Virus record (IMG/VR): IMGVR_UViG_3300030616_000016
Coordinates: 167,648-231,647 of that record
Direction: 5' to 3' (one strand)
Length of the DNA: 64,000 nucleotides
Each line of letters begins with the position of its first letter. Within the stretch, counting starts at the first letter, position 1. The notes beneath the pieces are model-generated. The model worked only from the letters and a program-made list of their open reading frames with translations, was not told where the DNA came from and searched no databases. A program made the position numbers and the translations under genes. This document shows, in pieces, positions 6,408 to 26,600 of this stretch.

Positions 6408-6422
6408 TCATGAGTATTGAAT

Positions 6423-7402: not shown

Positions 7403-8269
7403 ATGTCTCAATATTTTTGTGGTCCTAATTGTAAAGTTATTATGAGCGTTCCTGGTCGCAATGCCAGTTCAATTGAGCTCGACAACGCTTATTCCATAGA
7501 CTACAATAATCAATCAGACAAGCATCCTTTATACGGGTTTAGAGACACAGAATTCTCCGGCATAGCTCTCGGTCGAACCATAGTTACTGGCATGCTAGTT
7601 CTCAATAGAGAATTTAAGAACGAGCTCAGCATTGCTATTAAAGGCGATCTTGGTGCTAATGAAAGACCAGAATCAAGACCTTATGGTAATTATGTTTGGT
7701 TAACTGGGCTTTCCACCGAGCTGCAAAAGGCAAAAGATTTATTGCTCGATCTAAGTTCTACTAATGAGGAAATTAAAAATGAGATAGTGAGTCTTTCTTA
7801 TGCAGCTAAAGAGTTTGGTGTCAATATCAATTTTGCAGATTTCAAATCTATCCTCGCAAGACAACAGCTGGACGAGTTGATAAAAGATATTGAATCTCGC
7901 GATTTAGATGATACAATTAATAATAATACCAATCAGACCGTTAGAGTTATTTCAGAGAAATTAAGGAAAGGATCCTATGGCTTTACTGAAGCCCTTAAGA
8001 ATAAATACTGGAGAAAAGAATCCGACGTAAATAATACTCAAAGGCTAACAAGACCTTCTTCTGAAGATGTTTTTGAATATCTTAGAAAGCATGGTTATGA
8101 TGCTAATCTTGAAATACACTTTGGAGAAGATCAAGAACAATCAAATTATGCTGATCATAAAGAAGTTATTAAAGGCGTTTACTTTACTGGAGACAGAGGC
8201 CAGGCCAACATAGACTCCAGAGAGATAAACAAAGTATATTATTCATTTATTGCTAGAAGCATTGTATAG
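7403..8269 (+). CDS. Second tail tube paralog / baseplate tube initiator
   Basis: YFCGPNCKV...SIDYNNQSDKHPLYGF...IALGRTIVTGMLVLN and the C-terminal IKGVYFTG...YSFIARSI match the tube fold pattern. Confidence 0.7.
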   Translation: MSQYFCGPNCKVIMSVPGRNASSIELDNAYSIDYNNQSDKHPLYGFRDTEFSGIALGRTIVTGMLVLNREFKNELSIAIKGDLGANERPESRPYGNYVWLTGLSTELQKAKDLLLDLSSTNEEIKNEIVSLSYAAKEFGVNINFADFKSILARQQLDELIKDIESRDLDDTINNNTNQTVRVISEKLRKGSYGFTEALKNKYWRKESDVNNTQRLTRPSSEDVFEYLRKHGYDANLEIHFGEDQEQSNYADHKEVIKGVYFTGDRGQANIDSREINKVYYSFIARSIV

Positions 8270-8455: not shown

Positions 8456-9019
8456 ATGGCAGAAAAGCAAGTAGATAAAATTCCAGGTGAAATGCCTCCA
8501 GTCGAAATGCCTGTTCCGGAAGGAACACAGCAGCTTGCAGAAGATGAAGGCACAGGTCTTCCCAAAGGATTTGGCACCCCAGGTGCATCTGGCGCCCCAG
8601 GGGTACATCGGCCAGAACCATCTCTAAACCCAGAAGAAAAACCAGTAGACACACCTGATGTCAGTCGCGGAGATATTCCAGCCGAGATTCTTGGTCTTGA
8701 GCAATTTCTTCCAGCCGGGCTTACTGTAGAAATGGTTTGGCAATATAAACAGCAGTATGGAAATGTTTATATTGTTGAGGTCTGTGATCAGATCTATCTA
8801 TATCGTGCAATGGCCAAGCCTGAATACAAGAGCATCATGCAGATGGAAGGCGCTACAAGAGAAATGCAGGAAGAAAAGATTGCTGAGAAATGCGTTCTCT
8901 TCCCTGCGCTTGGTATTGAAGGCCTTAGAGTTGGACTGGCTGGTTTGGCATCGACTCTCACAGAGTATATTATGAGAGCCAGTGGATTTGGAGCGATGTC
9001 CACACCAACAAAATTATAG
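8456..9019 (+). CDS. Tail assembly chaperone
   Basis: YKQQYGNVYIVEV...YLYRAMAKPEYK...EKIAEKCVLFP...GLASTLTEYIMRASGF, with a disordered Pro-rich N-terminus. Lies between the tube and tape-measure genes. Confidence 0.72.
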   Translation: MAEKQVDKIPGEMPPVEMPVPEGTQQLAEDEGTGLPKGFGTPGASGAPGVHRPEPSLNPEEKPVDTPDVSRGDIPAEILGLEQFLPAGLTVEMVWQYKQQYGNVYIVEVCDQIYLYRAMAKPEYKSIMQMEGATREMQEEKIAEKCVLFPALGIEGLRVGLAGLASTLTEYIMRASGFGAMSTPTKL

Positions 9020-9028
9020 AGGATATAA

Positions 9029-9793
9029 ATGGGAGAATTATGCGAGGCCTATCTAGGTCCAGAATATCTTCCAGGTCCTCTTATATCGGGTGAATATTTA
9101 AAAGGTGAGGTGGCAGAAGATCCAATTTTGTCACCTCATCTTGCACCTTATATCGCCGCTCTATTAAAGAAGTACGACGATATATTTCATGTTAAGTATA
9201 ATGATCAGGATTTTATAATCCGGCCATTGACTTCAAATGAATATAAGATACTGTGTAAGCTTAGGTTATACTTCGATCCTCAATTAGGGTTCGAAAAGAC
9301 AAGGCCTAGGTTTAGTGTTGTAAGCCTAGAAGATATATTTATAGACTGTATTCTTTATCCTGAGAATGTACTTGATATGGATTTAGATGCATATGTTGTT
9401 GATATGCTTATAGAGACTGCAATACAATATTCGGGATGGGATTCACAGGAGGATATATTTGTAACAAAAGCTCAAATGCAAGCTCATGTAACATCAGATC
9501 TATTAGAGGGCATGTTTACATTTATTAGACGAGCACACCCAGGTCTTGGTGATCGCGATCTTGAAAACAAGAATATTATTGATATAATGAAGTTAATAGC
9601 AAGTGCTGAATTGATATTGGATAAGCCATTCGAGATAGTCACCAAAGATGATAAATCAGATGCTTCTAAAATATCAACCGAAGTTATGATCAAAGAAGAC
9701 TTGGCAGGTCTTAATAAGCTTAATATGCAAGGCTTAAATAAGCCGGAGCTAGAATATGCCCGTAACGCCCAGAGAAGAACAGGAAAGAAGTAG
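9029..9793 (+). CDS. Second tail assembly chaperone (paralog of the upstream gene)
   Basis: LKKYDDIFHV...FIIRPLTSNEYK...DCILYP...LIETAIQYSGW parallels the previous protein. It has its own AGAGGA RBS. Confidence 0.68.
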   Translation: MGELCEAYLGPEYLPGPLISGEYLKGEVAEDPILSPHLAPYIAALLKKYDDIFHVKYNDQDFIIRPLTSNEYKILCKLRLYFDPQLGFEKTRPRFSVVSLEDIFIDCILYPENVLDMDLDAYVVDMLIETAIQYSGWDSQEDIFVTKAQMQAHVTSDLLEGMFTFIRRAHPGLGDRDLENKNIIDIMKLIASAELILDKPFEIVTKDDKSDASKISTEVMIKEDLAGLNKLNMQGLNKPELEYARNAQRRTGKK

Positions 9794-12700
9794 TGGATGG
9801 CTTGGTTATGGCGCGGGATCATTAGCTGTTCTAGCTGGCGCATATATGCTTGGGAAGAATCCAAAGACGCTATACGCAATGGGCGAAACTTTGGACACCG
9901 CAGTATCAGCTATATCAGATGTAACCACCTTTGGTAAGCAACACATAGTAGAAAATCTTAGTAGAATCACTGGCAAGTTCGGTTCTTCCATAGAGACAGC
10001 TGCCAGAAGCCCTTCATCTACAAAAGCACTTAATCCAGAAATATTCAATTCCCTGCAAGGCGCTCTAAGCGCCTGGGAATCTGGCGCCGCAACTACACAG
10101 ACACTTAGAGACGCTCTTGCTGCCAAGTTCTCTAACGTAACGACGGTTAGACCGGGTGTACGTAATCTTCAAGTAAAAGAGATAACACAAGCATTCAGTG
10201 ATATCACTCCTGACGACCCTTTCACTTTATTTGGAAGATCTATAGATAAGAAGGGCGCTGGTCTTCTTAAACAGGCTCAAGAGATAGGAATTGTAGACAA
10301 AGACTGGGTTGCTGACAAAGGCATGTTTATTGATGGTCAGAGATTGGTTGACGCCAATATATTCAGGCCTGAGAAGTGGGGAGAATCTCTTGTAAAAACA
10401 TTACGTGGTGCTACTGGCGGATTCCTTACCGACTCATTACTGCCAAGTACCCATCTTCTTCGAGAGATTCCAGATATAGCTGAGATCTCAACAAAAGGGT
10501 TGGGCAAGCATATAAAAGAGGGAACACTAGATAAAGCCTTTAAGATTGGCGATCAACTTGTTGGTATAACAAAAGATAATTTTGTTGTTGACTTGCCTAA
10601 GCTTCGTGTTGGCCCAGTAGGAAATGCTATTTCTAAGGCACACGCTATAAGAAAGGGGCTTGTAAGACATAGAACAGTTGATGAGATGAAGGAGCTTCTC
10701 GCTTCCAGGGGGCAAGATCTTAATCCGCGTCAAGAAAAGCTATATAGAGCATTAGAAAATAGATTCCTTAGCGAGTATGTTGGCATTGGTCCTCAATACG
10801 CAAGTGAAACGGCGCTTCCAAAGATGCTGCATGGCTGGCTGGCAAAGTTCTACCAGACGGACCTTAAGCCAATATCGATGATTCCAGGCAAGTCATTCGA
10901 TGAGGTATGGGAAAATCTAAGCATTGGTCAAAGAGTCAAGGTTATGGCCAAAGGAGATGTTGATAGCGTCGCCTGGGCCAGAACTTCGATTGCTGGCGAT
11001 CAAGACATTCGATCTTTTGAACAGATACAAGAGATAAAAAGAGCTATCCATGGAGAAAGCTGGGAAGCTGCGCTGGATCCGAGTGGTGAAATATCTAAAA
11101 CAACATCGGTGTTTGGAAGAAGATCAGTAACCAATGCAGAGCAGTTTATGGCAGAAATGCTTGATGAAGAATTCAAGCACACTATGTCACACAACTACTA
11201 TGCCTATGATACTGCTGAACTTGCTGGTAACTGGGCACATACTGTCTTCACGACTCCATTTAGAATAGCATCCAACATGTTTGGATTTGGACTCAAGCAT
11301 GACTCGTTAGGAAAGACTGCGCTCAGAGCCACGGTTGGCATTCCTATGGCCGGATATCTCGCATGGCAGGGAGCAAACTATTTAGATTTTCTTACTGAGC
11401 AGACAACGACATTTAGTCCAATCAAAGGTGTTGCCAGAACATATGCAGAAGCTCAGATAGCCAAACAAAGCATGGCTAATCTTATAGGCATATCATATGC
11501 ATCTAAAACAGCAGAAAGTATGATTGGAATAGATATCGATTCTCCTATTTCCGTTGCGCTTAGAAGCATAGGACTGCCTATACTTGGAGCTAAGATTGGA
11601 CAAAAGATAAATCCTGGAATGGGACGACCTGGTATGTATGTCGGTATTGGGCTAGCCGCGCTTACTTTATCAGACGACCTATCTAGAGATGCAGATGAAT
11701 TAAGAGATATATATGAAGGAAGAAAAGAAGTTCCTGTTAGAAAGTCTCGCTGGTGGATGCTTGGATGTTTTGACCCTCACCAAAGCGTAATGCTTGAAGA
11801 TGGAAGCCTTGTCCATGCAGAAGATGTAGACAGTGGAATGGTAGTCATTAACGATATAGGAGAATATACAGAGGTGACTAATGTCTCTGTAAGAATTACC
11901 GATAAAGACGAGGAGCTAATTTCTATTCTGCCTCATGGATTTCCTTATCCAACAAAAATAACAGGCAATCATGAAGTTCTTGTCCACAGACGTCCTTGTA
12001 TCAAGCCATATACATATAAAACTGGATGTCATCCAAGACGAATCACGAATAGTTCGTGTAGATCTTGTCCGAATGCCTCGCCGGATCTTAATCTGTCATA
12101 TGTCAGAGCCGATGAGCTGAGGCCGGACGACTTTCTTATTCTGCCTAGGCTAAAATGCAACACCTCTATTGGGCTTATCGACCTGTCTGATTACCATGAT
12201 CTATTTGTCATCGATAAAGAAAAAATAGCAGCAGGTCAAAGATTGCATGGTGGTGTTCGGCGTGCTCCAAAAAGCAAATATACTAATAGAATTATACATC
12301 CCGATAAAGATCTCGGTATGCTTTTAGGTTGGGTTTTAGCAGAAGGAAGTAAGCATAGCGACAACTCTATTGAATGTGTGTATAATATTAGTGAAAGCGA
12401 TTTTGCCTTGCAAATGGGTAAAATAGCGCATGCCAAGTTTGGAGCTAGTTATAGCCTATCTGAAAGAGATGGTAGTACTGGGAGAATTGTTATAGGTAGT
12501 AAATTTTTACTCGGTTTTTGTACCAGTGTTGGCATACTGCCAAATAAAACTCCGAACATACGCAGAATGCTAGATTATGGTGAGTGTTTTGTTAAAGGGT
12601 TTGTCATAGGTGCTGTATATGGAGATGGAAGCTATACCGACGGCCATTGGAGATTCAAGGCGAAAAGACTACAGACATGTATTTTCTTGAGAGATATGAT

Positions 12701-15194
12701 CCATGCAGTCGGAGGAGCTGCTTCTATATGTCGAAACTCGTCTATGCTTGAAGGCAAGAGGTTTGATGCGTATTCAGTCACAATAATAGAATTAGATTTT
12801 GCTCTTATTAAGCATTATTATAAAGGAATACCAAAAACCAAGCAGTTAAAATCTGCAATTGGCTGTAAAGACTATGTTTTATATACAATCAGAAGCATAG
12901 TCGCCTCCGATCCTCCTGAAATTGTTTATGACTTCCATGTTAGAGACAGGAATAGCATCTGTTTGCCTGGGCATGTTGTTCACAACTCAGATCCCTTTGA
13001 AGGTGGAGACACTGATTATTACAGGCCTCACCTTATAGCCACAATGCTTTCTGATACCTCTGCCATGGAAGCAAAGTATGGTTCCAAGTCCGCATATTGG
13101 TCTCATGGCACAATGTTCCCTACGCCTCATAATGTATTTGGCTTGAGTATACTGGCTGACCCATACTATGTAGAAAGAAAGCATTACTATGATAGGCCGT
13201 ATCCAATAACAGGAAGATCTAATCTTGCAGAATTTCCTATCTGGGGCAACATACTTGATGCTACTCTTGGAGAGGTTATTAAGCCTACCAAGGTAATGCA
13301 TGAAAATGAACTGGCGCATTATATAACTCAAACCCCTGAGTTCTCTGGAGACAAAGGACTGCAGAGTGTAGCTCAGCAGCTGTCTCTAGCACAAATTAGG
13401 CCTGGTAAGGTGCTGCCAAGAGTAGAAGGAACGCAGGATGACATTGGTCATGCAATATATGACATGACTGAATTTGCTGGATTAAAGGGATTTCTATTTA
13501 CGTCTCTCAAGAAGCAAGTCACTGGAAGCCCTGACTTCTCTGACCAAGGCGCAAGATGGGCTAGTGCAGATGATATTTATAATAAATCTGATGCATACTA
13601 TGATCTACAGCTTGGTGGTATGCTAGGTGCAACCGAGTTCTTCAGAAGATTTTTACCACATAGACAAAACCAAATAGACTATGTTAATCCTCTAAGCAAT
13701 GAAGCTCCGGCATGGCTCCCTGGTAAAAGGTCTGTTTTTGGCGATACAGACTTTATAGATTTCCATAGCTCAGATCCATACACTCGTATCAAGGAGGGGT
13801 CTAAGCGTCTTCCAGGTGCTCAGTATGAAGCTATACACGAACTACATTCTGGTAAAAAAGGCGAATATGATGCTTTTGATAGAATGAAGATATTGGCTGA
13901 TGTCAGCCCATATTCTAATGCCTTCAAGTACTATAAGAACATAGTGGATAAGATGGCTCAGGACGGCCAGCTAGACGGCTATTGGATGGATGAATACCTT
14001 GAAATAGACAGGAGAATTAAAGGAGAAGGACTGCCCGACTTTGAAGCAGAGACAGCAAGTAAAGAGCTTGGTATTTCTGGTGCAGCTGCTGGGACTGCTG
14101 GCCTACTAAATAATCACCTTAGAATACCATGGGTAGGTACTAAGTTAATGAGCATGGATCAAGATCCGCTGGTAGACTATCAAGAGAAGATTTCATTCAA
14201 TAATGACTTCAATGATTGGACTAAACCAATAGACACTATGTTGATGCCATACATGCGCGCACAAAGTGCAAGAGGAGCTATCTCTGGAGCTTTTGGTGGT
14301 GCAACACTAGGTGTTCTTAGCTCAGCTGCTGGAGGTTCATACGCCGGTACTGTAGGAGCTATCGGAGCAGGCGTTGGAACAGTGATGGGATTGGCCGGCG
14401 TTAATGCTCCTGAAAATGAAATCAGAAGAAGGTCTATGGAAGAATACTTCGATAGCTTAGAATATCTGAAGTACAATAAACTAGCTGACAAGGCTGGCGA
14501 ACAAGGCAATATTGCTCTTGCAAATAGATTAAGAAGAATGTCTAAGAGAACCATGGTAGGACTCGACTATTCTCAAGACACAACCTCTTTCTATAAAGCA
14601 GCTTACAGCGCTCTCCCAAAACCGGACAGGCAGTATCTGCAGGCTTTTATCCAGGTTGATCCGGGTAAAAGACCTGAAGTCCTTGACAAAGTTCCAGATT
14701 ATATGCAGCCTATTCTTATGCGTCTATGGAAAGATCCAAAGTCCGAAGCTGATGCCGGCAAGCTATCAAGAGTAGACCAAAACAATAGAGCCCATCAGGC
14801 TGCTTTATCGTATGTAAACAGTCACGGCGGCGTCCCAGATGATGATTCTATGGTATGGCATCCAGATATTAGCATTGAAGATGTCAAACTAAAGACCATT
14901 AAAAATCTTGGTGCTGACATACATAACTTTGGGTTTTGGGGAACTGATGAGCGAGATCTTGAAAGAACGCGGCCTTATATCAAACCCCTTCCATTCTCAT
15001 ATAATACAAACACTTACCAATCTAATAGGTTGAATTTTACTAATAATATGTTACAATATGGTTTTAGCAATGTGTATGTTGATTTGATAAGAAATCCTAG
15101 CAGGCAGCCAGAAAATGTATATTCAATTAATATTCAGAGAAATAGACTTGGTGACATTGCAGGGTTTGACAGCAGGTCTGAGGGAAGGTTCTAA
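9756..15194 (+). CDS. Tape-measure-like protein containing an intein (1812-aa precursor, 1405 aa spliced)
   Basis: Follows the chaperones. Helical and Ala/Gly-rich, with hydrophobic and glycine-zipper segments (WLGYGAGSLAVLAGAY; GAISGAFGGATLGVL...GAIGAGVGTVMGLAG). The intein occupies aa 671-1077. Confidence 0.72.
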   Translation: MPVTPREEQERSSGWLGYGAGSLAVLAGAYMLGKNPKTLYAMGETLDTAVSAISDVTTFGKQHIVENLSRITGKFGSSIETAARSPSSTKALNPEIFNSLQGALSAWESGAATTQTLRDALAAKFSNVTTVRPGVRNLQVKEITQAFSDITPDDPFTLFGRSIDKKGAGLLKQAQEIGIVDKDWVADKGMFIDGQRLVDANIFRPEKWGESLVKTLRGATGGFLTDSLLPSTHLLREIPDIAEISTKGLGKHIKEGTLDKAFKIGDQLVGITKDNFVVDLPKLRVGPVGNAISKAHAIRKGLVRHRTVDEMKELLASRGQDLNPRQEKLYRALENRFLSEYVGIGPQYASETALPKMLHGWLAKFYQTDLKPISMIPGKSFDEVWENLSIGQRVKVMAKGDVDSVAWARTSIAGDQDIRSFEQIQEIKRAIHGESWEAALDPSGEISKTTSVFGRRSVTNAEQFMAEMLDEEFKHTMSHNYYAYDTAELAGNWAHTVFTTPFRIASNMFGFGLKHDSLGKTALRATVGIPMAGYLAWQGANYLDFLTEQTTTFSPIKGVARTYAEAQIAKQSMANLIGISYASKTAESMIGIDIDSPISVALRSIGLPILGAKIGQKINPGMGRPGMYVGIGLAALTLSDDLSRDADELRDIYEGRKEVPVRKSRWWMLGCFDPHQSVMLEDGSLVHAEDVDSGMVVINDIGEYTEVTNVSVRITDKDEELISILPHGFPYPTKITGNHEVLVHRRPCIKPYTYKTGCHPRRITNSSCRSCPNASPDLNLSYVRADELRPDDFLILPRLKCNTSIGLIDLSDYHDLFVIDKEKIAAGQRLHGGVRRAPKSKYTNRIIHPDKDLGMLLGWVLAEGSKHSDNSIECVYNISESDFALQMGKIAHAKFGASYSLSERDGSTGRIVIGSKFLLGFCTSVGILPNKTPNIRRMLDYGECFVKGFVIGAVYGDGSYTDGHWRFKAKRLQTCIFLRDMIHAVGGAASICRNSSMLEGKRFDAYSVTIIELDFALIKHYYKGIPKTKQLKSAIGCKDYVLYTIRSIVASDPPEIVYDFHVRDRNSICLPGHVVHNSDPFEGGDTDYYRPHLIATMLSDTSAMEAKYGSKSAYWSHGTMFPTPHNVFGLSILADPYYVERKHYYDRPYPITGRSNLAEFPIWGNILDATLGEVIKPTKVMHENELAHYITQTPEFSGDKGLQSVAQQLSLAQIRPGKVLPRVEGTQDDIGHAIYDMTEFAGLKGFLFTSLKKQVTGSPDFSDQGARWASADDIYNKSDAYYDLQLGGMLGATEFFRRFLPHRQNQIDYVNPLSNEAPAWLPGKRSVFGDTDFIDFHSSDPYTRIKEGSKRLPGAQYEAIHELHSGKKGEYDAFDRMKILADVSPYSNAFKYYKNIVDKMAQDGQLDGYWMDEYLEIDRRIKGEGLPDFEAETASKELGISGAAAGTAGLLNNHLRIPWVGTKLMSMDQDPLVDYQEKISFNNDFNDWTKPIDTMLMPYMRAQSARGAISGAFGGATLGVLSSAAGGSYAGTVGAIGAGVGTVMGLAGVNAPENEIRRRSMEEYFDSLEYLKYNKLADKAGEQGNIALANRLRRMSKRTMVGLDYSQDTTSFYKAAYSALPKPDRQYLQAFIQVDPGKRPEVLDKVPDYMQPILMRLWKDPKSEADAGKLSRVDQNNRAHQAALSYVNSHGGVPDDDSMVWHPDISIEDVKLKTIKNLGADIHNFGFWGTDERDLERTRPYIKPLPFSYNTNTYQSNRLNFTNNMLQYGFSNVYVDLIRNPSRQPENVYSINIQRNRLGDIAGFDSRSEGRF
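11766..12986 (+). mobile_element. Intein with LAGLIDADG homing endonuclease (407 aa)
   Basis: Block A CFDPHQSVMLEDGS, block B KITGNHEVL, LAGLIDADG blocks LGMLLGWVLAEGS and FVIGAVYGDGS, block F VYDFHV, terminal HN followed by a +1 Ser. The exteins join as RWWMLG|SDPFEGG. Confidence 0.93.
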
Positions 15195-18100
15195 TGCCTG
15201 ACAAGCCAGAACAAAGAAGTGGATCAGTAGCGCCTTGGTTGGTTGGCGGAGGGCTATTAGCTTTTGGTGGGTATCAGGGATATAAGCACTTCGGCCAGAA
15301 GCACTTAGGAAATATGGCAAATAATCTAGGCGATGAGATTAAAGCTGTTGTGCCATCAGTAGAACAAACCGAACAAATAATCAAACCAAGTTCTTCCACA
15401 GAATTCTGGCATAAGTTTGACAGAGCAGGAACTCCTGCAGCTGGCATTGGAGCCACAAATTCATTTATGCATGATATAGTTGATGTCGAAGATGCACACT
15501 ATAAAGGATTCGATGAGATTTTAACTCCTAAGAGAGCTGCTGCTTATAACAAAATTGTGACAGCTCAGCTTACCGACTTTCAGTCTGTTATGAATAATAC
15601 ACACGGAACCAATCTTCTTAATATAGAAGCAATCAACGAGTCTATAAATAGTGCAAATACTGGTTTTATTGATGGCATCAGCGAAAGAGCAAAGAGAAAT
15701 ACAGAAACAGCTGGCTTAATAGGAAGGTCTGATGTAGAAGATATATTTTTTGCTCATTATGGAAGAAAGGGTAAAAGAGCTCAAGAGTTCATTGCAAGAG
15801 AGCAGGCTGCTGTATCACAACTGGAAGATATAGCAAGCCGGCTTACAGCATCAACTGGGCATCAAGTTAAAATACAGGCCATTAACCGCAGCGGTGTAGC
15901 TCCAGAAATAGGGCTCAGAGTAGGTGGCGAGTTTATTTCTATGGGCGCCGCCACTGGAACAAGGCTTCAGTTTGGTTCAAATGTATATCAGGGGCCTCAA
16001 GCCATTCTTGGCAGAACAGCTGAAGGCAGGCTAAAGACCATGACCTTTCATGAAGCTTCTGTAAATGTTCTTGAACAAAAAATGGGCGAGCTAAAAGGCA
16101 TCAAGTCTTCAAGTCAGCTTAGATCCAAGATATCCGGTATATTATCCGAGCCTAGAGAGGCCGCAATCTTTTCTAGTCCTGAAGATAAGATGAGAGCTAT
16201 AGCTGGTGTTCCTGGACAACCTATGAGCGCTGCCGATGTCGCTAGAAGTGGTAACATTGTAACTATGCCGAGTATAGTTAAAGAATCAGGCGCACAAGCT
16301 TCAAGAGATGCTGCTGAAACTCTTAGAAGAATAACTGAATGGGCAGGCAAAGAGGATTGGGACGAGACTACTCGCGCAAGAATGTTTCATATAAAACCTG
16401 GACAAAGGATTACTCCAGAGCGCGTGCTAAGGCATTTCGTTACAGCTGTTAAAGGAGATAAGGTAGACAGACTGACTTTCTCTGCTTTTACTTCTTTGAA
16501 AGCTCTTACGGTTGGAGGGATGCTCACTCCGTTTCAAAACATAGCCAAGGAAGGCGGCGAGGAACTACGCACAGGATTGCTTAGAAAATCTCAATCCGCC
16601 AAATATAAATATAATAAGTATTATGGCTATGGAAGGGAAATGAGACGGCAGAATCTTGCTGGGCTTCTTGCAGGTGAGGGTTCTGAGCGTTTGGCTGGAA
16701 GCGTAAGTGGCAAGGTTCATGCTATAGATAAAGTTCAGAAATTAATTGATGGTGAATGGGTAGACGTTCCAGACAAACTAGTTGGCGCGTTAGGTGGTAA
16801 ATTTTCAGGTGGTTCTGGTGTTATGGCTATTAGTGAGGAATTCGGCGATTTATCTCACGAGTCATCTGGAGATTATATGCTCAAAAAGATAAGCGGCTCT
16901 CCTAACAAGAAAATCAAAGATACAATTAATGAACTTGCAAGAAAGGGCAAGCTAGATGTAAGGAATCTAAAAGCAGCGGGTATTACAGTTCGCAAAAAAG
17001 ATGCTCAGGGGCTATTGCGAACTGAAACAGGAAGCCTGGAATTTAGCCAGGCTGCTTTAAAGCAAGCAAGCGAGACAGAAAACTCTCTGGTTATACCCGG
17101 TAAAAGACTTAGAAAAATAAGTGAATCTGGCTATGCTTTTAGGCTTGGGCCTACTAGTGTTTCAGCTACAAGAGGTACTCGATTTATAGGCAAAGGCTCA
17201 GAGGGAGTTCTTGGTGCTTTGTGGTCAACGAATATTAAACCGGAAGTAAGATCTCAAATGGCTTATGCCACAATACAGAGCCTAATGGAAGAATCAGATA
17301 TCAAATATTCTCGCAATTTAGACGAGTTTGCAGCTACTATATCTGGTGAACTAGATAGAGCCGATCCTAATGCCAGATATTTTAAAGGCGTAGAAGGCAA
17401 TCAAAAAAGATGGCAGCAGCTTACAGATCTAATGACTGAAAGAATGCAGAAAGAAGGAGTAGATAAACGTAGCCTGGATAAGTTTAGAGCATCTATGGAA
17501 GGATATGGTCCTGGTAAGACCATAGAATTTGCTGCTGAGGGTCAACACTACAGAGCTAGAGCTACGACACTAACTGGTACTGCGTTTCCTAGAATGTATC
17601 CTCTTGAAGAGGAGACAGCATTGCATGGTACAGTAGGCAGATATAAATCTGAGTATACAAAGAAGCTGGATGATTTTAATAAAGCATTGGCTGGACATGA
17701 GGACCTTCCTGGTGTTCAAAGATTCATGGAAGCTCAAACAAAGAAACATAGTATTCTTGAAGATGTTTTACGCCACGAATCTGTGCCAGATACACTGATA
17801 AGAAACTTCAATGAAGCTGAAACTCAACAGCTAGAGGCCATAAGAGAAATACAAAGAATGGAAGGCGGTCCAATAAAAGGCATAGAGAAGAAGTTTATTG
17901 CACTCAAAACAAGCGAAGAACAGTTTATGTCCAAGCTTACACAGAGAGCGCAAAGTACTCCACGCAGATATAGACCACAAGACTTTATGATGATGGCTAT
18001 AAAAGCTCATGCTGACCCTGAAAACAGAGACACAGGTGTGCTTGAGTATCTGCTTCGCATGCAGGAAGGTAGCCAGGCTCGCCGCAGCTTTCAAAACGTG

Positions 18101-20698
18101 GCTATGGCAGCTGAGCCTTTATTTGGAACAAGTACCAAACAGATTATTGAAGAAGTAGACAAGGGTATTCTATTTGGCAACAAGGCCTTTAGTTTATCAA
18201 ATCCTGATGACGTCGAACAGCTTAAAGTTATTACCAATGTCATGGGTCAGATTAAAGATGCGGCAGATTCTGCAGACGACGAAGTTGTCAATGCCATGTC
18301 CATACAAGACATTCTTAGAAGATCTAAAGGCCAATTTGAAGCTGCTGGATTAGGAGATGTTAATCCAGAAGAGCTTCTAAGTAAAAATCTTGCTATTACA
18401 GGAATGCCAGAAGGCACGTTCATGGATCTGGAAATTGAACAGGCTCTTAAAACAGGTACTGATAAGTTTCTTGTTTCTTCAAAGAATCAAAGAGAAATGA
18501 TACTTCCATCTCTTGGAGCAACAGGAAGGCTGTTTGGCAAAGGTCCTAATGCTGAAATGATATCTTTGAATGAAATGCGCAGGTCTATACTTGGTGCACA
18601 CCATGGGCTGTCTCTTATGTTAGAAGACGGAGAAAACATAGACGCTCTCAGATCCTCATATGCTACATTTCTTAAATCGCTTGCAGAGGAAAGCCATAAA
18701 ACCGGTTTGTTTGGTAGAGCAGGCGAATTGCAGTGGACTAAAAGCGCGTATCCAAACATCAGACAGTTTGATTTCTCAGATATGAGAAGAATGGATTATC
18801 TTCGTCAGGCTAAGGATTGGGCTGGATACCAGGCAGAAGCTGCTACTGTTCATATAAGCAGAGAAATGGCTGAAGAGTTTGGTGCGCTCGACAAGCTTAC
18901 CAAAAAGGGCGCCGATGATCTTTATGCTCATATGCAGTCTTATCCCGGCCTTACTCCTGGAATGCAGAGGACGGTTAAGCTTAGACTAGATGAAAACCTC
19001 AGAGGCAGGCAAATGAAGGTTGGATATGGAATTGCAATAGCCGGAGCCAGAGACTTTGATGCTGACCGTGTTGCTTTGATGTATCTAGGTGATGAGCATG
19101 AAGTTGTTAGAAATCTTTTGAACAACGATCCTAATTTATCCAAAAGCGATGCCAAGGCTATGGCTCGTAAATTTGTTTCTAGCATGAAGCAAGATTTTAG
19201 AGCAGATGCAGAGTCTATAGCATATCTACAACATTCTGAGATGAAGCTTGCACAGCGCGTTGCAGACGCAAACTTTTTATCAGCAACAAACAAGTTACAT
19301 AAAGATGCTAATGTTAATGCTGTTAGAGATATCGTCAATTATATGGGAAGGATTGATGATGTAGAAATTAAGTCTGGTGCTTACGACGATGAGATTCAGC
19401 GAATTCTATCTAAGCACGATATATCTGGTACAGCCGCAGATACGATGATCGACGTATTTAAAAAGAAGCTTGTAGCATCTAAAGAACTTGGTGTAACTAC
19501 AAACAAGCTTATGATGATGCGTAATACTCTTGCCGATAATATGATTAGAGACAAAGGAAGCAGGCAAGCTACTGATTTCGCGATACAATACTTTCATCAA
19601 ATAACACAGTCTCTTATTAGCGCTAGAAAGCATGGAGAAAAAGGTGATGCTTCTAGAGAATTAATCGAACTTCTGCAAGGTAGATCTGTTGATGGTGATT
19701 TCAAGAACCTTACAAGAGCACACAAGGATAAAATAGGCGAGCTGTTAGGAGAATCTCTTGTTGAAGGCGGTCTTGCTGGAGAGGTAAAAGACAGATGGTT
19801 GTGGAGAAGTGTTGATGAAGGCGTGTATGATTCTAACCAAGTTAAGTGGATAATAGATGAGCAAGCACAAAAGCTAAACGTAAAATCATTCAATGAATTA
19901 AAAGAAACCTTTGTTAACTTGGCAGAAGAAAATCTTAGAAGAAGAAATGAATGGGACGAGTCTAATTTCTTGTTTGAAACAACCATGAAGAAGTCTGGGC
20001 TTGGTAGATTTGCAGAGAGAGGTCAATGGTCTGTTAGACAGTTTATTGAACAGGCTCCTAAGCATATGAAGAAGCTTGGTGCCTTTGTTAAGAAGCAAGC
20101 AGATCTTCCTGAGTTTGCTCGTCTTGTTTCTCATATAACTGGAATCAATGCTATTGCAGCTTATGCTGACGACGCATCAAGGGCTACTATAAGAGAGGCT
20201 GAGAAGACAGCTTCAGATGCTTTAAATTATGCAAAGGCTGGCGATGCAGCTGCTGACATAGCAACTTCCAAAGGTAAATCATGGCTTACCAGACTGTTTG
20301 ATAAGTCAGACGAATACTTGGCTGGATCACCAAAAGCTAAGTACGCACTTGCTGGAGCTGCTATAACAGGTGCTGCTGCCTTCACATTTAGAATGTTTAG
20401 CGACCCGACCATGCCAGCTCCAGAAAGACCTGGTCCAGCCGCTCCGCCTGCTATGCCAATGGATCCAAGACAGCGCGGCATAACTCAATATCAAGGCGCT
20501 CCGCCGGCTCCTGTTTCTCCTTCATATGGCCTTGCAGATAGATTCATATCCTCAGGCTTAAGCGCTGCTCCAGAAATAGCTGTTGCAGAAATGACTAATT
20601 CACTGGACGGGCGTGGTTCTTTTGATATAATGGATCAGAGCCTAAGCGATCCACAATTCCAGGAAGAGTACGAATCGGCTCAGAGAGGTAGGTTTTAA
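15194..20698 (+). CDS. Giant virion protein with a two-barrel RNA polymerase beta-prime-like double-psi-beta-barrel (DFDAD); putative virion RNA polymerase
   Basis: aa ~1160-1300 are collinear with beta-prime motifs: LKSLAEESHKTGLFGR, VHISREMAEEF, HMQSYPGL, GRQMKVGYGIAIAGARDFDADRVALMY. Both termini are hydrophobic. Coupled to both neighbours by TAATG overlaps. Confidence 0.65.
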   Translation: MPDKPEQRSGSVAPWLVGGGLLAFGGYQGYKHFGQKHLGNMANNLGDEIKAVVPSVEQTEQIIKPSSSTEFWHKFDRAGTPAAGIGATNSFMHDIVDVEDAHYKGFDEILTPKRAAAYNKIVTAQLTDFQSVMNNTHGTNLLNIEAINESINSANTGFIDGISERAKRNTETAGLIGRSDVEDIFFAHYGRKGKRAQEFIAREQAAVSQLEDIASRLTASTGHQVKIQAINRSGVAPEIGLRVGGEFISMGAATGTRLQFGSNVYQGPQAILGRTAEGRLKTMTFHEASVNVLEQKMGELKGIKSSSQLRSKISGILSEPREAAIFSSPEDKMRAIAGVPGQPMSAADVARSGNIVTMPSIVKESGAQASRDAAETLRRITEWAGKEDWDETTRARMFHIKPGQRITPERVLRHFVTAVKGDKVDRLTFSAFTSLKALTVGGMLTPFQNIAKEGGEELRTGLLRKSQSAKYKYNKYYGYGREMRRQNLAGLLAGEGSERLAGSVSGKVHAIDKVQKLIDGEWVDVPDKLVGALGGKFSGGSGVMAISEEFGDLSHESSGDYMLKKISGSPNKKIKDTINELARKGKLDVRNLKAAGITVRKKDAQGLLRTETGSLEFSQAALKQASETENSLVIPGKRLRKISESGYAFRLGPTSVSATRGTRFIGKGSEGVLGALWSTNIKPEVRSQMAYATIQSLMEESDIKYSRNLDEFAATISGELDRADPNARYFKGVEGNQKRWQQLTDLMTERMQKEGVDKRSLDKFRASMEGYGPGKTIEFAAEGQHYRARATTLTGTAFPRMYPLEEETALHGTVGRYKSEYTKKLDDFNKALAGHEDLPGVQRFMEAQTKKHSILEDVLRHESVPDTLIRNFNEAETQQLEAIREIQRMEGGPIKGIEKKFIALKTSEEQFMSKLTQRAQSTPRRYRPQDFMMMAIKAHADPENRDTGVLEYLLRMQEGSQARRSFQNVAMAAEPLFGTSTKQIIEEVDKGILFGNKAFSLSNPDDVEQLKVITNVMGQIKDAADSADDEVVNAMSIQDILRRSKGQFEAAGLGDVNPEELLSKNLAITGMPEGTFMDLEIEQALKTGTDKFLVSSKNQREMILPSLGATGRLFGKGPNAEMISLNEMRRSILGAHHGLSLMLEDGENIDALRSSYATFLKSLAEESHKTGLFGRAGELQWTKSAYPNIRQFDFSDMRRMDYLRQAKDWAGYQAEAATVHISREMAEEFGALDKLTKKGADDLYAHMQSYPGLTPGMQRTVKLRLDENLRGRQMKVGYGIAIAGARDFDADRVALMYLGDEHEVVRNLLNNDPNLSKSDAKAMARKFVSSMKQDFRADAESIAYLQHSEMKLAQRVADANFLSATNKLHKDANVNAVRDIVNYMGRIDDVEIKSGAYDDEIQRILSKHDISGTAADTMIDVFKKKLVASKELGVTTNKLMMMRNTLADNMIRDKGSRQATDFAIQYFHQITQSLISARKHGEKGDASRELIELLQGRSVDGDFKNLTRAHKDKIGELLGESLVEGGLAGEVKDRWLWRSVDEGVYDSNQVKWIIDEQAQKLNVKSFNELKETFVNLAEENLRRRNEWDESNFLFETTMKKSGLGRFAERGQWSVRQFIEQAPKHMKKLGAFVKKQADLPEFARLVSHITGINAIAAYADDASRATIREAEKTASDALNYAKAGDAAADIATSKGKSWLTRLFDKSDEYLAGSPKAKYALAGAAITGAAAFTFRMFSDPTMPAPERPGPAAPPAMPMDPRQRGITQYQGAPPAPVSPSYGLADRFISSGLSAAPEIAVAEMTNSLDGRGSFDIMDQSLSDPQFQEEYESAQRGRF

Positions 20699-23600
20699 TG
20701 AATAAAAATATTAAAATAGGTCCAGTACAATTAAGTGTTGACGCTGATAGCTTTTCTATATCAGATAGAAAGGTTAATACAATGGTGCCTGGTCTTCGAA
20801 GTAATATACCAAAGGTCATCAATACAGGAAAGAGCAGGCTCGAATATTCCTTCAGTGCTATATTCGCAAACGAAGAAGAGATCAACACAAAGCTAAGACC
20901 TATTATTGCCTATTTCAAAGCAGTTCCTTTTATTACTGTAAAATCAGATGTATTGAATAAGCTTCTTGCAACTCGTCTTGTATCAAAAGCTGTTGCGAAT
21001 CAAAGCAGCTCCTATGATAAGCTAGGTTCTAATTTTATACAGAATAAACTTATCAGCGATCTTCGTAATGCAATATACGAACATCTTTTAGATCCTATTG
21101 TTAAGAGCTACATGAATTTGACTGTTATAGATAAAACTATAATAGATCAGTTTATAAAAGAAAAACTTGGTGTGTCATTGGATGATATAAATCGACCAGC
21201 TCTAAGAACTCTTGTGTCAAGATATGTAGAGCTAAATTACTATGTGTCTAAGGCCACAATCCCTATCAAGGGTGGATCTAACGAACAGCAGATACGTGAA
21301 TTAAGAAAGCATATAAGAGAAAAACTCGCTGGCCAGCTAAAAGAAAGAGATGTTATAGACAGAGCAAAAACTGCTGGTATAGTACAGGTTGCTGATGCCT
21401 CTGATGTATATGATGGTGACACTTTTGTTGTTAGTGGAACAACATATCGTTTATTTGGCGTAGATGCATTTGAAACAGTAAGACCAGGAACTCAGCTTGG
21501 TCCAGGTCAAGAAAAGAAACCTGAGAAATCATACGCAGCTTCCGCTAAATCCTTTCTTGTAGACAGACTTGTTGGTCAGAACTTTACTCTATCTGAAGTT
21601 GGAACTAGAACATATAATCGTGTTTTAGGAATATGCGAATCCGTATCTCCAAGCCATGGAGAGAATGCTAATGTTGGTTTAGAGATGGTTAGCCAAGGCA
21701 TAGCGCTTCCATCTGGCGTTGCAAGTATGGGTAGATATGCAACTATAGAAAGCTTGCCATATCTCAAAGCTGCTAAAACTGCTGCAGAATCTGGGTTGGG
21801 GATATGGAGTCAATCTGAAATTCAAGTGCCAGAGCTTTGGAGAAAGTATGCACAAAATATTAACAACTTTGCTAATCCGTCAAGTCCGACTGTTTTAGAT
21901 TCAGACATACAAGAATTGACAATAAAGCCTGCATCTGTTCTTAAACAGCTTATCGATTCTTTAATTGAAGAGCTTGAGGGTCGTACTCCTAATATAGGTA
22001 TTAACTTTGTTGCATCTGCTCAGCCAATCTTAGATGCATATGAGCAGAGCATTGTATCTGAAGACAAGAAAAAAGAGGACGTAGATAGAGTTTCTGAGTT
22101 TATTGGATTCCCAGAAGATCTTATCCCGTCATGCTTTGCTGGTATTTCATATTCAGCAGTGCACGATTTACCACAGGCCATACAGGCACAGTTTCATTTC
22201 TCAGTGTTCAATCATGCTCCTTATGGTCCTACTTTTGGCTTCAAGTCTGACGTAGTTCAGCAAAACGGAGTTTCAGCGGTAGTATCAGATCCAGACATAA
22301 CATATTCACGTTTAGTGCAAGGCTATGTTAGCAAGGAATTTTTGGAGGAGCCAGCATCCAAACAATACCTAACAGCATACACGCCAGCTAAAGACTTTAC
22401 CATACACTATAATGATGTAGACACGATTGTTAAGAAGACATCAAAAGCTAAATTAAGAGAGTCAGATATTAAGACTAGCGAAAGAGTGCAGAAGTCAAAG
22501 GAAATGTTGAACAAGCGCGAATCTGTTGTGTTCATAGGGAAGCGAATTACTATATCTCCTGATTCTGGTGAGATAGAAATATCAATATTGGAGGATGAAG
22601 AAAAGAAACAGTCAACTGTACATAAGCTTAATAATATACAAATTGAATCTGTAAGCTGCAACATAACAAATAACATTGTCCATTTACCTATTGAAGCTGC
22701 CGCTATTCCAACTGCTCAACACATTGGAAGAGGTATAGGTTCTGTGTCGTTAGAGATTTCTTCTACAGATGAGAACTCTATGGCTGTTTTTAGAACTCTT
22801 GAGCATGCTATTCAAAATGCAATGCATATATCCAATCAGTATGGAGCTCCTACTTCTTTCAGAATAACTAATCCAACAATTAATTTGTCTGGAGCCAAAG
22901 ACTTTGTTTTCGATAATATAGTTGTTAGCAATGACAGATCAGCTCCAGGTAAGTATAATATGAGGATTAATCTGGTCGAAAGCTTTAATGCCGAGGAAGA
23001 CACAGAAGAGAAATTGATACCTAAGATTGATTTTGATTTCAAGGATGGCTCTGGTGTCGCAAAGAAAGTAGTAGAGGCATTAAAAGAACACGCTGGTAGT
23101 CCATTTTATGACAAGTTTATGTCTACTTTCTTCCCGATGACAAAGCCTAGTAGGTCTGTTTCTTCTGATATAGAAGAGTATGTAAATACATATCCTCTTA
23201 TGCTTCTATTTGCTCACACCCATAAAGACACGCCAAATCCGGTTCTTTTGGATGCATACGGAGAAAATATAGGATTTATAGAAAGCTTTTCTAATATTGT
23301 AAATAGAGTTAAATATGACAACATAACTCCCAAAGCTGTTAATATGAGAGACAATCTCATTGAAAGATTGTATCAAATTGATCGCGCATGGTTCGTAGAT
23401 ATAGCTAGCTCTCTTCCAATAAACATAAGCACTGCAATAAATGAAAGAAATCCTTTTAGCACAGCGTCTTCAGTACAAGATGATGTAAGAAAGTTTAGCA
23501 ACCAGTCAATAGTATTTGACAAGGATAATTATAATCCAAGCTATTTGATAAAAGGAGGTAAGTGGGTCATTGGCCCATGGGGTAAAGGACCAGGCGCTAC

Positions 23601-26600
23601 TGCAGGATCAACAGATGCCATGTTAAATCGCAGAGACTACTTTTTGCAGTTCTTATCTACAAAAGATTTTACCAAAAAGTATTTGTTAAACTTATCACAA
23701 GGTTGTTTTAGTGCTGCATATTATTTCAGAAATCTTTTTGAAGATGAATTAGATAGCAACGAGCAAGCTAAGAAAGCCTTTTATAATTGCATCTCATTTC
23801 TTCTTAGCGAAGCTCTAGAATCTAGTCCTAATTTTGAAGGCTTCTTTGGTGCTTGGATTACAAGACAGGTAGGCCTTTATTCTGAAGACCTAGATAGAAG
23901 TCTTTTGCCCACAAGACAAGAGCCAACTACATTTAATGATCTTAATCTACCTACATATAGAGATGTATTTGGCAAAACAGACTCAGTAGTAATTGAAGAA
24001 AGAAAGAAGTTGATTTCTGACTTGCGTGCTATTAGCATTTATATTCCAGAGATATCATACAATGTAGATACTATATCTAGTCCGTATCAATTTTATTCCG
24101 ACATTGTTACTCAGTATCATGTTGGCAAGAGTAATATTGGCCTTCATATGATTAGCGGTTCTAATTTATATAGATCCCAAGACAAGGCTCTCGATAATGT
24201 ATATGACACTGCAGTAGAAATTTACTCAAAAGAAACTGAGACGATGAAATCTAGGCTGCCTGTTTCTGATGCAGTACTTCCAAGAAATAAAGAGTTTTGG
24301 TCGCGTTTAGACCCAAATGCAATAGCTCGTTCTCCAGATGATGTCGTTGAGCCTGGGTGGATGTATGATCTTCAGTGGGAAGATGTGTCTGATACGGCAT
24401 CTGTTACAATGAACCATCTTAAAAAGGTGCATTCTAATAATGTTAACAAGATATCGCCAATAACAACTAATGACTTAGAAGACAATGACATACTTAACAA
24501 CTATGAAGATCTAACTGTAGGCGATAATTACATAGAAAAGATAAAAGAAGTATCTAGTAAAAAAAGAATGTTCAAAGGGTCGCAAATAGGCGATATTAAC
24601 TTTGCTGAAGTTCCTTTACAGTCTATATCTTCTGTTGATAAGTCTAAAAAGAAGTATCCGTCAAGCGGGACAAGTACTACGACTAACTTGCCTGGTAGTT
24701 TTTCTACTGACTCTATCGATACTGATAGACATACTAACAGATTAACAAGAGATAGATATAAAGACGACAAGATATCTTCTATTAGAAAAGCTTATCCAGG
24801 ATACGCGATATATTTTCTTGAAGAGGATGCAGAGGACTGGGGTTATCTTGATGATTATTACAGGTACGACTCAGTTATATCTTGGGACGTTGTACAATCC
24901 AAAAAAGATATAGACACTGCAGTAGTTAAATTTACTAACTTTAAGGGCGTGTTAAGCAATCAGTCTCCAAACAAAGATCGCCTAAAAGATGAAGTTGTTA
25001 GTGCAACTGAAACTGTTGATGAAAGTATTTCTGAGCCAGTGGATCCTAACTCTGCTTATGAGGGAGACCTAAGTGGTCTAGAAGGGCTGTTAACAGCCTT
25101 TAAGCTTAGACAAGGAACTAGAATTATTATCAAGTCTGGATTTACAACTAAGATTTCTGAGATGGAGACTATATTTACCGGACAAGTGGTCGAAGTATCC
25201 CCTGGAGATATCATCACTGTTATTTGTCAAGGATATGGATCTCAGCTTATGTCTTCCATGAATAAAGAGTTTATGTGGGATGATCATAACTTCCCAGAAA
25301 TATTATCAACGGTTCTTTATGACACAACTTACTTTGGCAAATGGGAGAGATTTGTTGATAGGCTTCCTGGTCAAAGTAAAATGTATAGCGGAACCGTAGG
25401 ATCAATTATTTCTCACAAGCTTATAGGCGATTATTTTCCTAGCACCGCTGATGATAATATATATAGAATAGCAAAACCTCACGATAATTTCTTTAAGTGG
25501 ATGTGGGATTGGGCGTGGGGAACAAATTGGCAAATTCGAGGACCTATTTGGTCTAATATATTGACAATGACAAGATATGTGCCAAATACGATACTAACAA
25601 TTCGTCCTTACGATGGACGAGCTACGCTGATATGGAATGATTATGATGGCTACTATATTGACACTAACCACATAAGCAGTCTTAGTTCTCAAATCGGCCA
25701 TGCTGCCTCGGATTATTTGCTAAGGTCTGGTCTTAAACAAAACGACAACCAGACCAAATCAGAAATGCTTGGTGAGATTTTATCCAATGATATTTTTACA
25801 TCTAATGGATCATCTAGTCCGTATATGAGAAGCGAACAAAGGCTAAGCGATGCCAGGTCAAATTTATACAACCACGGCATATATGATTTTAATGATAAAA
25901 TAGACTTGATTAATGAGGAGCTGATATTAACCATTTTGTCTGATTGGTTCATGGATAAGTTTCTTAAAAATATAATAATTAGTAGTGAAGAGCTATTTTC
26001 AAATCATGTAGTTAAGCTAAGAATGGATTCTACCGTACCAATCTCTATTGAACCTATTCTGAAGACCATGGAAAGACCTAGTCAAAAATATAGCGAAGCT
26101 GTGCCATTTTCTCCGCTTTCTAAGCCTACTGGAAATAGAAAAGTCGAAAGCAAGTTTTATGTGTCTGATGTTAGCGGAAATATTGCAAGGGGTATTATTC
26201 CCATAGCATACTTACTACCAGAAAACGTAAATATTGCTAAAGACAGAGACAATATAAGAATAGATCAAATTAAAAAAATAGTTAGTGCTGTAGTTAGATA
26301 TGCAGAGAATCATCCTGGCATAGGTATCAATATCAAAGACGGCAAAACTATGGATGCTATTATGCAGTCTTTAGATATGGAGAATATCATACCTGGATAC
26401 TTGGCTATGTATGATAGTCGTAATTTCTTAGCTGCATTTGAAATATATCTTCCAATTAGTCGCGAGGTTGTATCGCAGATATTATCGTATTTACTTCCTG
26501 CGATATATGGATCTGTAGACTATGTCAGCAGGAATCCCGGCACATTTTTATCTGACGTAAACAATAGCGCAGATAAACTAAAAGATCCGTATGTACCTCC

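Follow-up and report, generated by a model that had tools for sequence, protein, structure and literature searches.

Giant B, a 1834-residue protein encoded in the tail module of an uncultured jumbo myovirus related to Bacillus phage 0305phi8-36, occupies the slot of a tape-measure protein and carries, at residues ~1170–1300, a domain that appears homologous to DPBB-A, the catalytic double-psi beta-barrel of the beta-prime subunit of RNA polymerase (RNAP). Delivery of a polymerase through the tail is, in our view, the best explanation of this combination, and one that we favour with modest confidence. The gene lies on the + strand at 15194–20698 of the window, by which we mean the whole 64-kb stretch of DNA that was analysed, the right-hand part of the 231,647-bp viral contig IMGVR_UViG_3300030616_000016. 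An earlier note on the window, made from its letters alone, had proposed a polymerase at this place; the open reading frame (ORF) that it described proved to be free of interruptions, every peptide that it quoted was found where it had been placed in the protein, and its D-F-D-A-D motif does lie at nucleotides 19052–19066.

Conservation of the giant B family

Relatives were sought by an exhaustive HMMER search over 1.84 billion representative proteins and by word-seeded searches over 5.8 billion proteins, which together returned ~11 full-length sequences. They form a close clade, in which P0002 and P0003 share 47% and 29% identity with giant B, respectively, and a distant clade (P0005–P0011, L004 and L005) at 15–17% identity. 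The clades are joined through exactly 87 residues around the motif (HMMER E 2.8e-4 against the 1.84 billion proteins; tblastn 4e-9), a link that is also backed by gene order, which is identical, and by a shared C-terminal architecture. No members were added by a mixed-profile protein search, further IMG/VR scans and one genome scan, and tblastn searches of 50,697 phage records with giant B and a distant relative gave no match, so that this collection holds no member of the family, which is new and very rare.

The alignment of 11 sequences (15–47% identity) contains only 24 invariant columns, five of which (R1286, D1287, F1288, D1289 and D1291) belong to the R-D-F-D-x-D motif, and no other part of the protein is conserved as strongly as the motif block. 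The three aspartates, whose conservation among homologs the earlier note had set as a check, are invariant, and position 1290 is Ala in 10 of the 11 sequences and Met in the other. Further conserved elements lie upstream of the motif in the order known from beta-prime, namely a K-x-G...S-G-Y-x-x-h block (K1169 conserved in at least 90% of the sequences, G1171 and Y1186 invariant), a T-V-x-I-S strand with a short helix after it, and an invariant proline (P1251) 35 residues ahead of the motif; the first of these blocks, residues 1169–1190, resembles beta-prime at the level of pattern only.

The block of three genes encoding giant A, giant B and giant C, where A and C are the large proteins encoded directly upstream and downstream of giant B, is kept in every relative examined, and giant B is a conserved giant tail-module gene under purifying selection. 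The protein terminates in G-R-F, as giant A does. Throughout the close clade, giants A and B open with similar Gly-rich hydrophobic segments of the form M-P-..-P-.-E-Q-.-.-S-.-G-..-W-L-.-G (9756–9850 and 15194–15290) and both end in [GS]-R-F (15150–15191 and 20650–20695), likenesses that are absent from the distant clade; these common ends may represent a shared assembly or targeting signal.

A predicted beta-prime-type barrel around the motif

LEF-9, the beta-prime-like catalytic subunit of the baculovirus RNA polymerase, is the only curated family matched by any member of the giant B family. The match (Pfam PF05094) was obtained for the 47% relative, P0002, over residues 1244–1304, which lie exactly on barrel and motif, with an E-value of 7.7e-4 for the full-length protein and 5e-5 for a crop; its score of 22.5 bits lies below the gathering score of 27, and P0002 is the one member of 11 that matches. 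Giant B itself matched nothing in PHROG, Pfam and NCBIfam. In the same Pfam test two proven RNAPs, gp66 of phage phi14:2 and gp96 of the long-tailed Thermus phage P23-45, gave no match either, and absent matches are therefore normal for this kind of enzyme.

The structure of residues 1140–1335 (nucleotides 18611–19198) was predicted using AlphaFold without templates and with an alignment of family members only. The model has a predicted local distance difference test score (pLDDT) of 67.6 and a predicted template-modelling score of 0.59, and a second run gave the same result. Its elements follow one another as strand, strand (TVHI), helix, strand (LYAHMQS), strand, strand, helix, DFDAD loop and strand; the catalytic double-psi barrel of beta-prime has this same order, and in the model the motif falls in the loop that precedes the last strand. 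A barrel around DFDAD, the outcome on which the earlier note had staked its reading, is predicted with moderate confidence.

When the model was compared with the PDB using Foldseek, all of the top 50 matches were largest subunits of RNAPs, including bacterial beta-prime, cyanobacterial gamma and Pol I A190/RPA1. These matches have E-values from 1.2e-3 to 5e-3 and probabilities of 0.77–1.00 (at least 0.89 for all but one), and extend over 137–235 aligned columns (140–200 for most). Among predicted viral structures (BFVD), 23 of the 29 named matches are RNAP subunits or LEF-9, three matches reach an E-value of 1e-3 or better, and the best stands at 1.1e-4; the six other named matches include crAss-like phage proteins, a UFD1 N-domain, a protein of phage vB_AbaM_ME3 and a siphovirus ‘minor tail protein’. 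The UFD1 N-domain is presumably a double-psi barrel as well. Taken together, the conservation, the LEF-9 match and the fold make it likely that residues ~1170–1300 form a beta-prime-type catalytic barrel with all three aspartates, as had been suggested from the letters.

Two of the BFVD matches are of separate interest. The ‘minor tail protein’ of an uncultured siphovirus (A0A8S5SD80) has the highest template-modelling score (TM-score) among them, 0.46, and the vB_AbaM_ME3 match is an uncharacterised protein (A0A172Q021) of a jumbo phage; judged from such models, polymerase-like proteins may be associated with phage tails more often than the single published case suggests. The double-psi barrel of peptidoglycan hydrolases (MltA, 3D or RlpA-like) was considered as another identity for the domain and rejected, as it gave no Pfam match and does not occur among the top 50 fold matches.

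The tape-measure slot and the flanking giants

The window is filled by a single long structural module on the + strand, which begins with a capsid protein and continues with tail, baseplate and fibre-like genes. The sheath, tube-like and baseplate J/gp6-like genes bear out the myovirus tail module that had been recognised around giant B. By sheath similarity, the nearest cultured phages are 0305phi8-36 (31% identity) and Moorella phage MTATph1, in which the order is sheath, tube, tube paralog, chaperonins, giant, giant and hub. Giant A alone separates the chaperone-position ORFs from giant B, which stands where 0305phi8-36 has gp146, with the gp145 ortholog on one side and the baseplate hub on the other. 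This gp146 is annotated as a ‘hypothetical tape measure protein’ and was identified as a virion protein by mass spectrometry; the synteny upholds the tape-measure position assigned by the earlier note. Homology of giant B to known tape-measure families was found neither in PHROG, Pfam and NCBIfam, nor by tblastn against the 50,697 phage records, nor with gp146 itself; the chain is predicted, with low confidence, to be mostly helical.

Neighbouring giant ORFs share one base (TAATG, a stop/start overlap), and the start of giant B is preceded by GAGGGAAGG, a Shine-Dalgarno-like, purine-rich stretch; the overlaps and the ribosome-binding stretch together indicate translational coupling. No tRNA, Rfam family or tandem repeat was found in the region, and a promoter and terminator scan gave nothing informative.

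Giant A, always directly upstream of the giant B family member, is the ortholog of 0305phi8-36 gp145 (E 1.5e-100), which mass spectrometry likewise identified as a virion protein, and of MTATph1 CDS0026 (E 4e-95). It matches no known family and no PDB entry, and it contains very strongly conserved His/Asp/Pro-rich blocks at residues ~1320–1390 that look enzymatic. A 407-residue intein with a LAGLIDADG-type homing endonuclease interrupts it at an invariant motif, beginning with a Cys after R-W-W-M-L-G and ending in H-N before S-D-P-F-E-G-G. The insert is absent from all four aligned relatives, and the Pfam Intein_splicing match (E 2.7e-5) ends exactly at its last residue; the PDB holds no sequence match to it. 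Further inteins in this genome are possible: upstream on the same contig are a 998-residue ORF with a faint LAGLIDADG_3 match (L103:2352-5348) and an unusually long large terminase of 1014 residues (L104:4514-7558).

Giant C, always directly downstream of giant B, carries a staphylococcal-nuclease (SNase) domain (Pfam E 1.4e-8), and a nuclease on a tail hub is unusual. Its residues ~1970–2124 form a baseplate-hub or peptidoglycan-hydrolase-like region, and this C-terminal part is common to the 0305phi8-36 hub gp147 and to hub or ‘endolysin’ proteins of jumbo myoviruses. Residues 2130–2170 are strongly hydrophobic. No paralogy was detected among giants A, B and C.

Polymerase or exapted barrel

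By analogy, giant B is probably a tail-delivered polymerase comparable to P23-45 gp96, and we infer its packaging, injection and role in early transcription from the gene position and from the precedents of gp96 and of phi14:2 gp66. The protein would become part of the virion as the tail is built, probably inside the tube lumen or at the base of it, alongside giant A and the hub protein giant C, and contraction of the sheath would eject it. The C-terminal hydrophobic segment and the Pro-rich tail could then anchor it at the cell envelope, while the invariant R-D-F-D-x-D loop would bind Mg2+ and catalyse nucleotidyl transfer; the first phage transcripts would be made on the entering DNA with no need for the host polymerase, as for gp96.

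A number of observations weigh against such a role. The motif by itself is weak evidence, not beyond chance: D-F-D-A-D is the sole D-F-D-x-D across all six frames of the window, with 0.28 expected from composition per window and 0.024 per protein of 1834 residues, and D-x-D-x-D occurs nine times in the window’s coding proteins (0.63 expected per 1834 residues). It is because of the family conservation, the LEF-9 match of a relative and the fold search that we regard the motif as non-random. Profile comparisons with beta-prime, gp66 and gp96 did not reach significance. Using hhalign, the best local alignment of the family to E. coli beta-prime falls on the NADFDGD loop with a non-significant E-value of 0.26, and the pairwise alignments to beta-prime on which the earlier note had relied stay short of significance when profile methods are used. 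The cropped family compared with an 80-sequence beta-prime profile gave P 0.011 (P 0.054 for the reversed control), only the motif was aligned with gp66 (E 0.19, not significant), and no similarity to residues 1–1200 of gp96 was found. PDB sequence searches with giant B and with profiles of 2, 11 and 5 sequences likewise returned no RNAP.

The structural evidence has limits of its own. The best Foldseek E-values, 1.2e-3 in the PDB and 1.1e-4 in BFVD, are marginal, the TM-scores are 0.28–0.39, the DFDAD loop itself has a pLDDT below 50, and the DFDxD signature may itself have steered AlphaFold towards an RNAP-like local fold. For these reasons we rate homology of the domain to DPBB-A as likely and no higher. 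In addition, no second barrel was detected in giant B, either in an AlphaFold model of residues 640–1700 (pLDDT 48.9, almost all helical, with meaningless fold matches) or by hhalign against E. coli beta, a comparison that was negative for giant A as well. Neither of the two places that had been put forward for the second barrel (around nucleotides 16800 and 17175) has a column that is invariant, or nearly so, among the 11 aligned sequences. Of the single-chain two-barrel enzyme originally proposed, the catalytic barrel is likely, and the second barrel was found in neither giant B nor giant A. About 170 residues past the motif, the block containing Q1469 and Q1472 forms long helices in the low-confidence model and gave no confident match; in gp66 the bridge helix comprises residues 1529–1559 and the motif lies at 1361, a roughly similar spacing that makes the conserved helical block of giant B (residues ~1425–1483) a candidate bridge helix only.

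The active site departs from the canonical pattern at two positions. The filter for RNAPs used by the authors of the P23-45 study demands [RK]-x-P 20–100 residues ahead of DxDxD (PMC10770324, Suppl. Data 4). The Arg or Lys of this element is absent from giant B, where the earlier note had correctly seen a Ser, and is not conserved in the family, in which the Pro alone is invariant: the three close-clade sequences have Ser, Ala and Ala at position -2, and an Arg occurs near the Pro only at -3 (P0003) or at -5 (distant clade). The second departure, Ala for the Gly of the motif, is likewise confirmed and conserved, and its weight as a sign of inactivity, which is how it had been put forward, is lessened by active or accepted RNAPs that also lack this Gly. 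The active RNAP gp66 has DFDID, and the P23-45 survey includes DVDID, DQDPD and DNDKD (PMC10770324), so that a non-Gly fourth position is compatible with activity. Finally, gp146 and its MTATph1 counterpart CDS0027 (1309 residues) have neither a DxDxD motif nor any similarity to the giant B family, and the slot therefore needs no polymerase.

A rival explanation is that giant B is a tape-measure or ejection protein with an exapted DPBB-A-homologous barrel, itself no polymerase, in which R-D-F-D-x-D has some other metal-dependent or structural role, for example in binding or cleaving nucleic acid or in anchoring the protein in the tube. We consider this rather unlikely, even though the missing second barrel, the missing Arg of R-x-P, the mostly helical and tape-measure-like prediction and the non-polymerase giants that hold the slot in 0305phi8-36 and MTATph1 all speak for it. 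Three aspartates with a flanking Arg and Phe that remain invariant at 15% identity point to a working metal site and not to a relic; gp66 is active although only the surroundings of its motif are conserved and ~1600 of its residues are without a recognisable homolog; and the low-confidence model of residues 640–1700 leaves room for a second barrel.

Giant A is always adjacent to giant B and translationally coupled to it, is strongly conserved with its His/Asp-rich blocks, and is interrupted by its intein in an invariant motif, a typical trait of essential enzymes; moreover, split multisubunit RNAPs are common in jumbo phages (PMC7598289). One could accordingly imagine a split enzyme, with giant B as the beta-prime-like half and a beta-like barrel supplied in trans by giant A or from elsewhere in the 231-kb genome. 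This is very unlikely, as giant A is conserved to the same degree in 0305phi8-36 and MTATph1, both of which lack a DFDxD protein, and its function is therefore independent of giant B; the negative comparison of giant A with E. coli beta and its lack of PDB matches point the same way. Just as improbable is that giant B is unrelated to polymerases, a tape-measure-like protein of the ordinary kind whose acidic loop is conserved and whose RNAP-like model is an artefact that AlphaFold produced from DFDxD: the non-significant profile comparisons with bona fide RNAPs, the Foldseek E-values near 1e-3 with low TM-scores and the commonness of DxDxD would be in keeping with this, but the LEF-9 match is independent of AlphaFold, the conserved strand, helix and Pro ahead of the motif fit a barrel and not a loop alone, and 50 of 50 PDB matches to the same type of subunit over 137–235 columns are not expected by chance.

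Features of the tail module and of the contig

Table 1 Features of the tail module and of giant B (window positions; residues where given)
Feature	Residues	Nucleotides	Strand	Remarks
Tail sheath		4299–5648	+	Same order as 0305phi8-36 ORF139-144
Tube and tube paralog		5668–6360, 6417–7400	+	Module order as 0305phi8-36 ORF139-144
Three small ORFs in chaperone position		7403–8269, 8456–9019, 9029–9793	+	Order as 0305phi8-36
Giant A	1812, including intein	9756–15194	+	Ortholog of 0305phi8-36 gp145
Giant A intein	407	11766–12986	+	LAGLIDADG-type homing endonuclease
Giant B (gene under study)	1834	15194–20698	+	Uninterrupted ORF
Giant B, hydrophobic Gly-rich N-terminal segment	~12–30	15227–15283	+	Conserved in the close clade only; giant A starts similarly
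Giant B, K-x-G...S-[GA]-Y-x-x-h block	1169–1190	18698–18763	+	Colinear with the part of beta-prime that directly precedes the catalytic barrel
Giant B, predicted beta-prime-type double-psi beta-barrel (DPBB-A-like)	~1183–1297	18740–19084	+	AlphaFold and Foldseek
Giant B, R-D-F-D-A-D, putative Mg2+-binding catalytic loop	1286–1291	19049–19066	+	Conservation
Giant B, conserved helical block	~1425–1483	19466–19642	+	Q1469 and Q1472 invariant; candidate bridge helix
Giant B, conserved C-terminal hydrophobic (transmembrane-like) segment	~1712–1733	20327–20392	+	Second most conserved block, common to both clades
Giant B, Pro-rich linker and conserved C-terminal tail		20399–20695	+	P1776, G1779, P1793 and terminal F1834 invariant
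Giant C	2283	20698–27549	+	Hub position, directly downstream of giant B
Giant C, SNase domain	251–372	21448–21813		Pfam
Giant C, baseplate-hub or peptidoglycan-hydrolase-like region	~1970–2124	26605–27069		
Baseplate J/gp6-like gene		29001–30149	+	Fibre-like genes also in this part of the module

Two other proteins of the contig carry acidic motifs. A 763-residue ORF on the - strand (L105:67-2358; contig ~144,044–146,332), ~21 kb upstream of the window start, contains S-S-D-C-D-G-D-T-L-T-L-H-V at residues 340–352, which resembles the catalytic motifs of beta-prime and LEF-9 (N-T-D-C-D-G-D). From this motif it is possibly a second, non-virion polymerase or polymerase subunit; no relatives were found in the PDB, the phage database or IMG/VR, and hhalign aligns the motif only (E 0.1). 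Within the window, a structural protein of 1163 residues with no family match (ORF 44071–47562) has DADGD and DYDVD 16 residues apart (46336–46398), which may be a calcium-binding pair.

Implications

A tape-measure-slot virion RNAP has already been published for one siphovirus, P23-45 (PMC10770324), a case that makes our reading of giant B less novel and at the same time more plausible. Literature searches returned nothing on the giant B family, nor on any tape-measure-slot RNAP of a myovirus. If giant B is active, tail-slot polymerase delivery either arose or was kept in contractile-tailed jumbo phages too, and the family, in which no sequence relationship to gp96, gp66 or cellular enzymes could be detected, would represent a new deep branch within the superfamily that two-barrel polymerases form. 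It would also offer a second system in which to ask how an enzyme of ~200 kDa passes the tail tube, as well as a test case for a minimal RNAP active site that has neither the Gly of DFDGD nor the Arg of R-x-P. A search for giant tail proteins with a conserved DFDxD finds such candidate enzymes where profile methods fail.

In its most far-reaching form, the proposal would have an active tape-measure-slot RNAP pass along the tube of the tail and attach to the membrane by its C-terminus, with a second barrel that is either too divergent to be recognised or provided by co-ejected giant A, starting a cascade of two polymerases that hands over to the product of the 763-residue DCDGD ORF. We consider this full scenario unlikely.

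Comparison with known systems

To our knowledge, phages deliver two-barrel polymerases in three ways only, namely as head-packaged multisubunit enzymes (phiKZ/AR9), as crAss-like gp66 and as the tape-measure fusion of P23-45. The last of these, gp96, is a tape-measure protein whose N-terminus holds an active two-barrel virion RNAP and which also has membrane segments (PMC10770324). Like gp96, giant B is a giant protein encoded in the tape-measure slot, and its relatives, as those of gp96 do, keep a DFDxD motif. The two also have in common a membrane segment on the same chain (in giant B the C-terminal hydrophobic, transmembrane-like segment), the lack of any similarity to the sequences of cellular RNAPs that could be detected outside the motif, and the same proposed coupling of DNA entry to first transcription. 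The two differ in that gp96 belongs to a siphovirus, is 5002 residues long, has its polymerase at the N-terminus (DFDGD at 779) and contains a metallopeptidase, whereas giant B belongs to a contractile-tailed jumbo phage, is 1834 residues long, has DFDAD at 1287 and yielded no peptidase. Both barrels of gp96 have been solved and its activity has been shown, while giant B is known from its sequence and a model.

The likeness to phi14:2 gp66 (PDB 6VR4), a virion protein of 2180 residues, lies in the non-Gly fourth position (DFDID-K compared with DFDAD-R/K in the giant B family), in a motif about two thirds along the chain with conservation only around it, and in the location of the gene in the middle of three consecutive giant genes (g067-g066-g065); crAss-like proteins are also among the BFVD fold matches of giant B. 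The giants flanking giant B, however, have no detectable homology to g067 and g065, and phi14:2 is a crAss-like podovirus whose gp66 is packaged in the head or as cargo. LEF-9 resembles giant B through the P0002 match over barrel and motif and through the LEF-9 proteins among the fold matches, but is a ~500-residue subunit of a four-subunit polymerase of insect viruses (baculovirus/nudivirus).

The same slot as that of giant B, after a gp145-type giant and before the hub, is taken by gp146 in 0305phi8-36 and by CDS0027 in MTATph1. Lastly, although the virion RNAPs of the phiKZ/AR9 type are split into beta and beta-prime parts, have clear cellular homology, are packaged in the head and are not encoded in the tape-measure slot, they too belong to jumbo myoviruses and are polymerases of the two-barrel type delivered with the DNA, as is proposed here for giant B.

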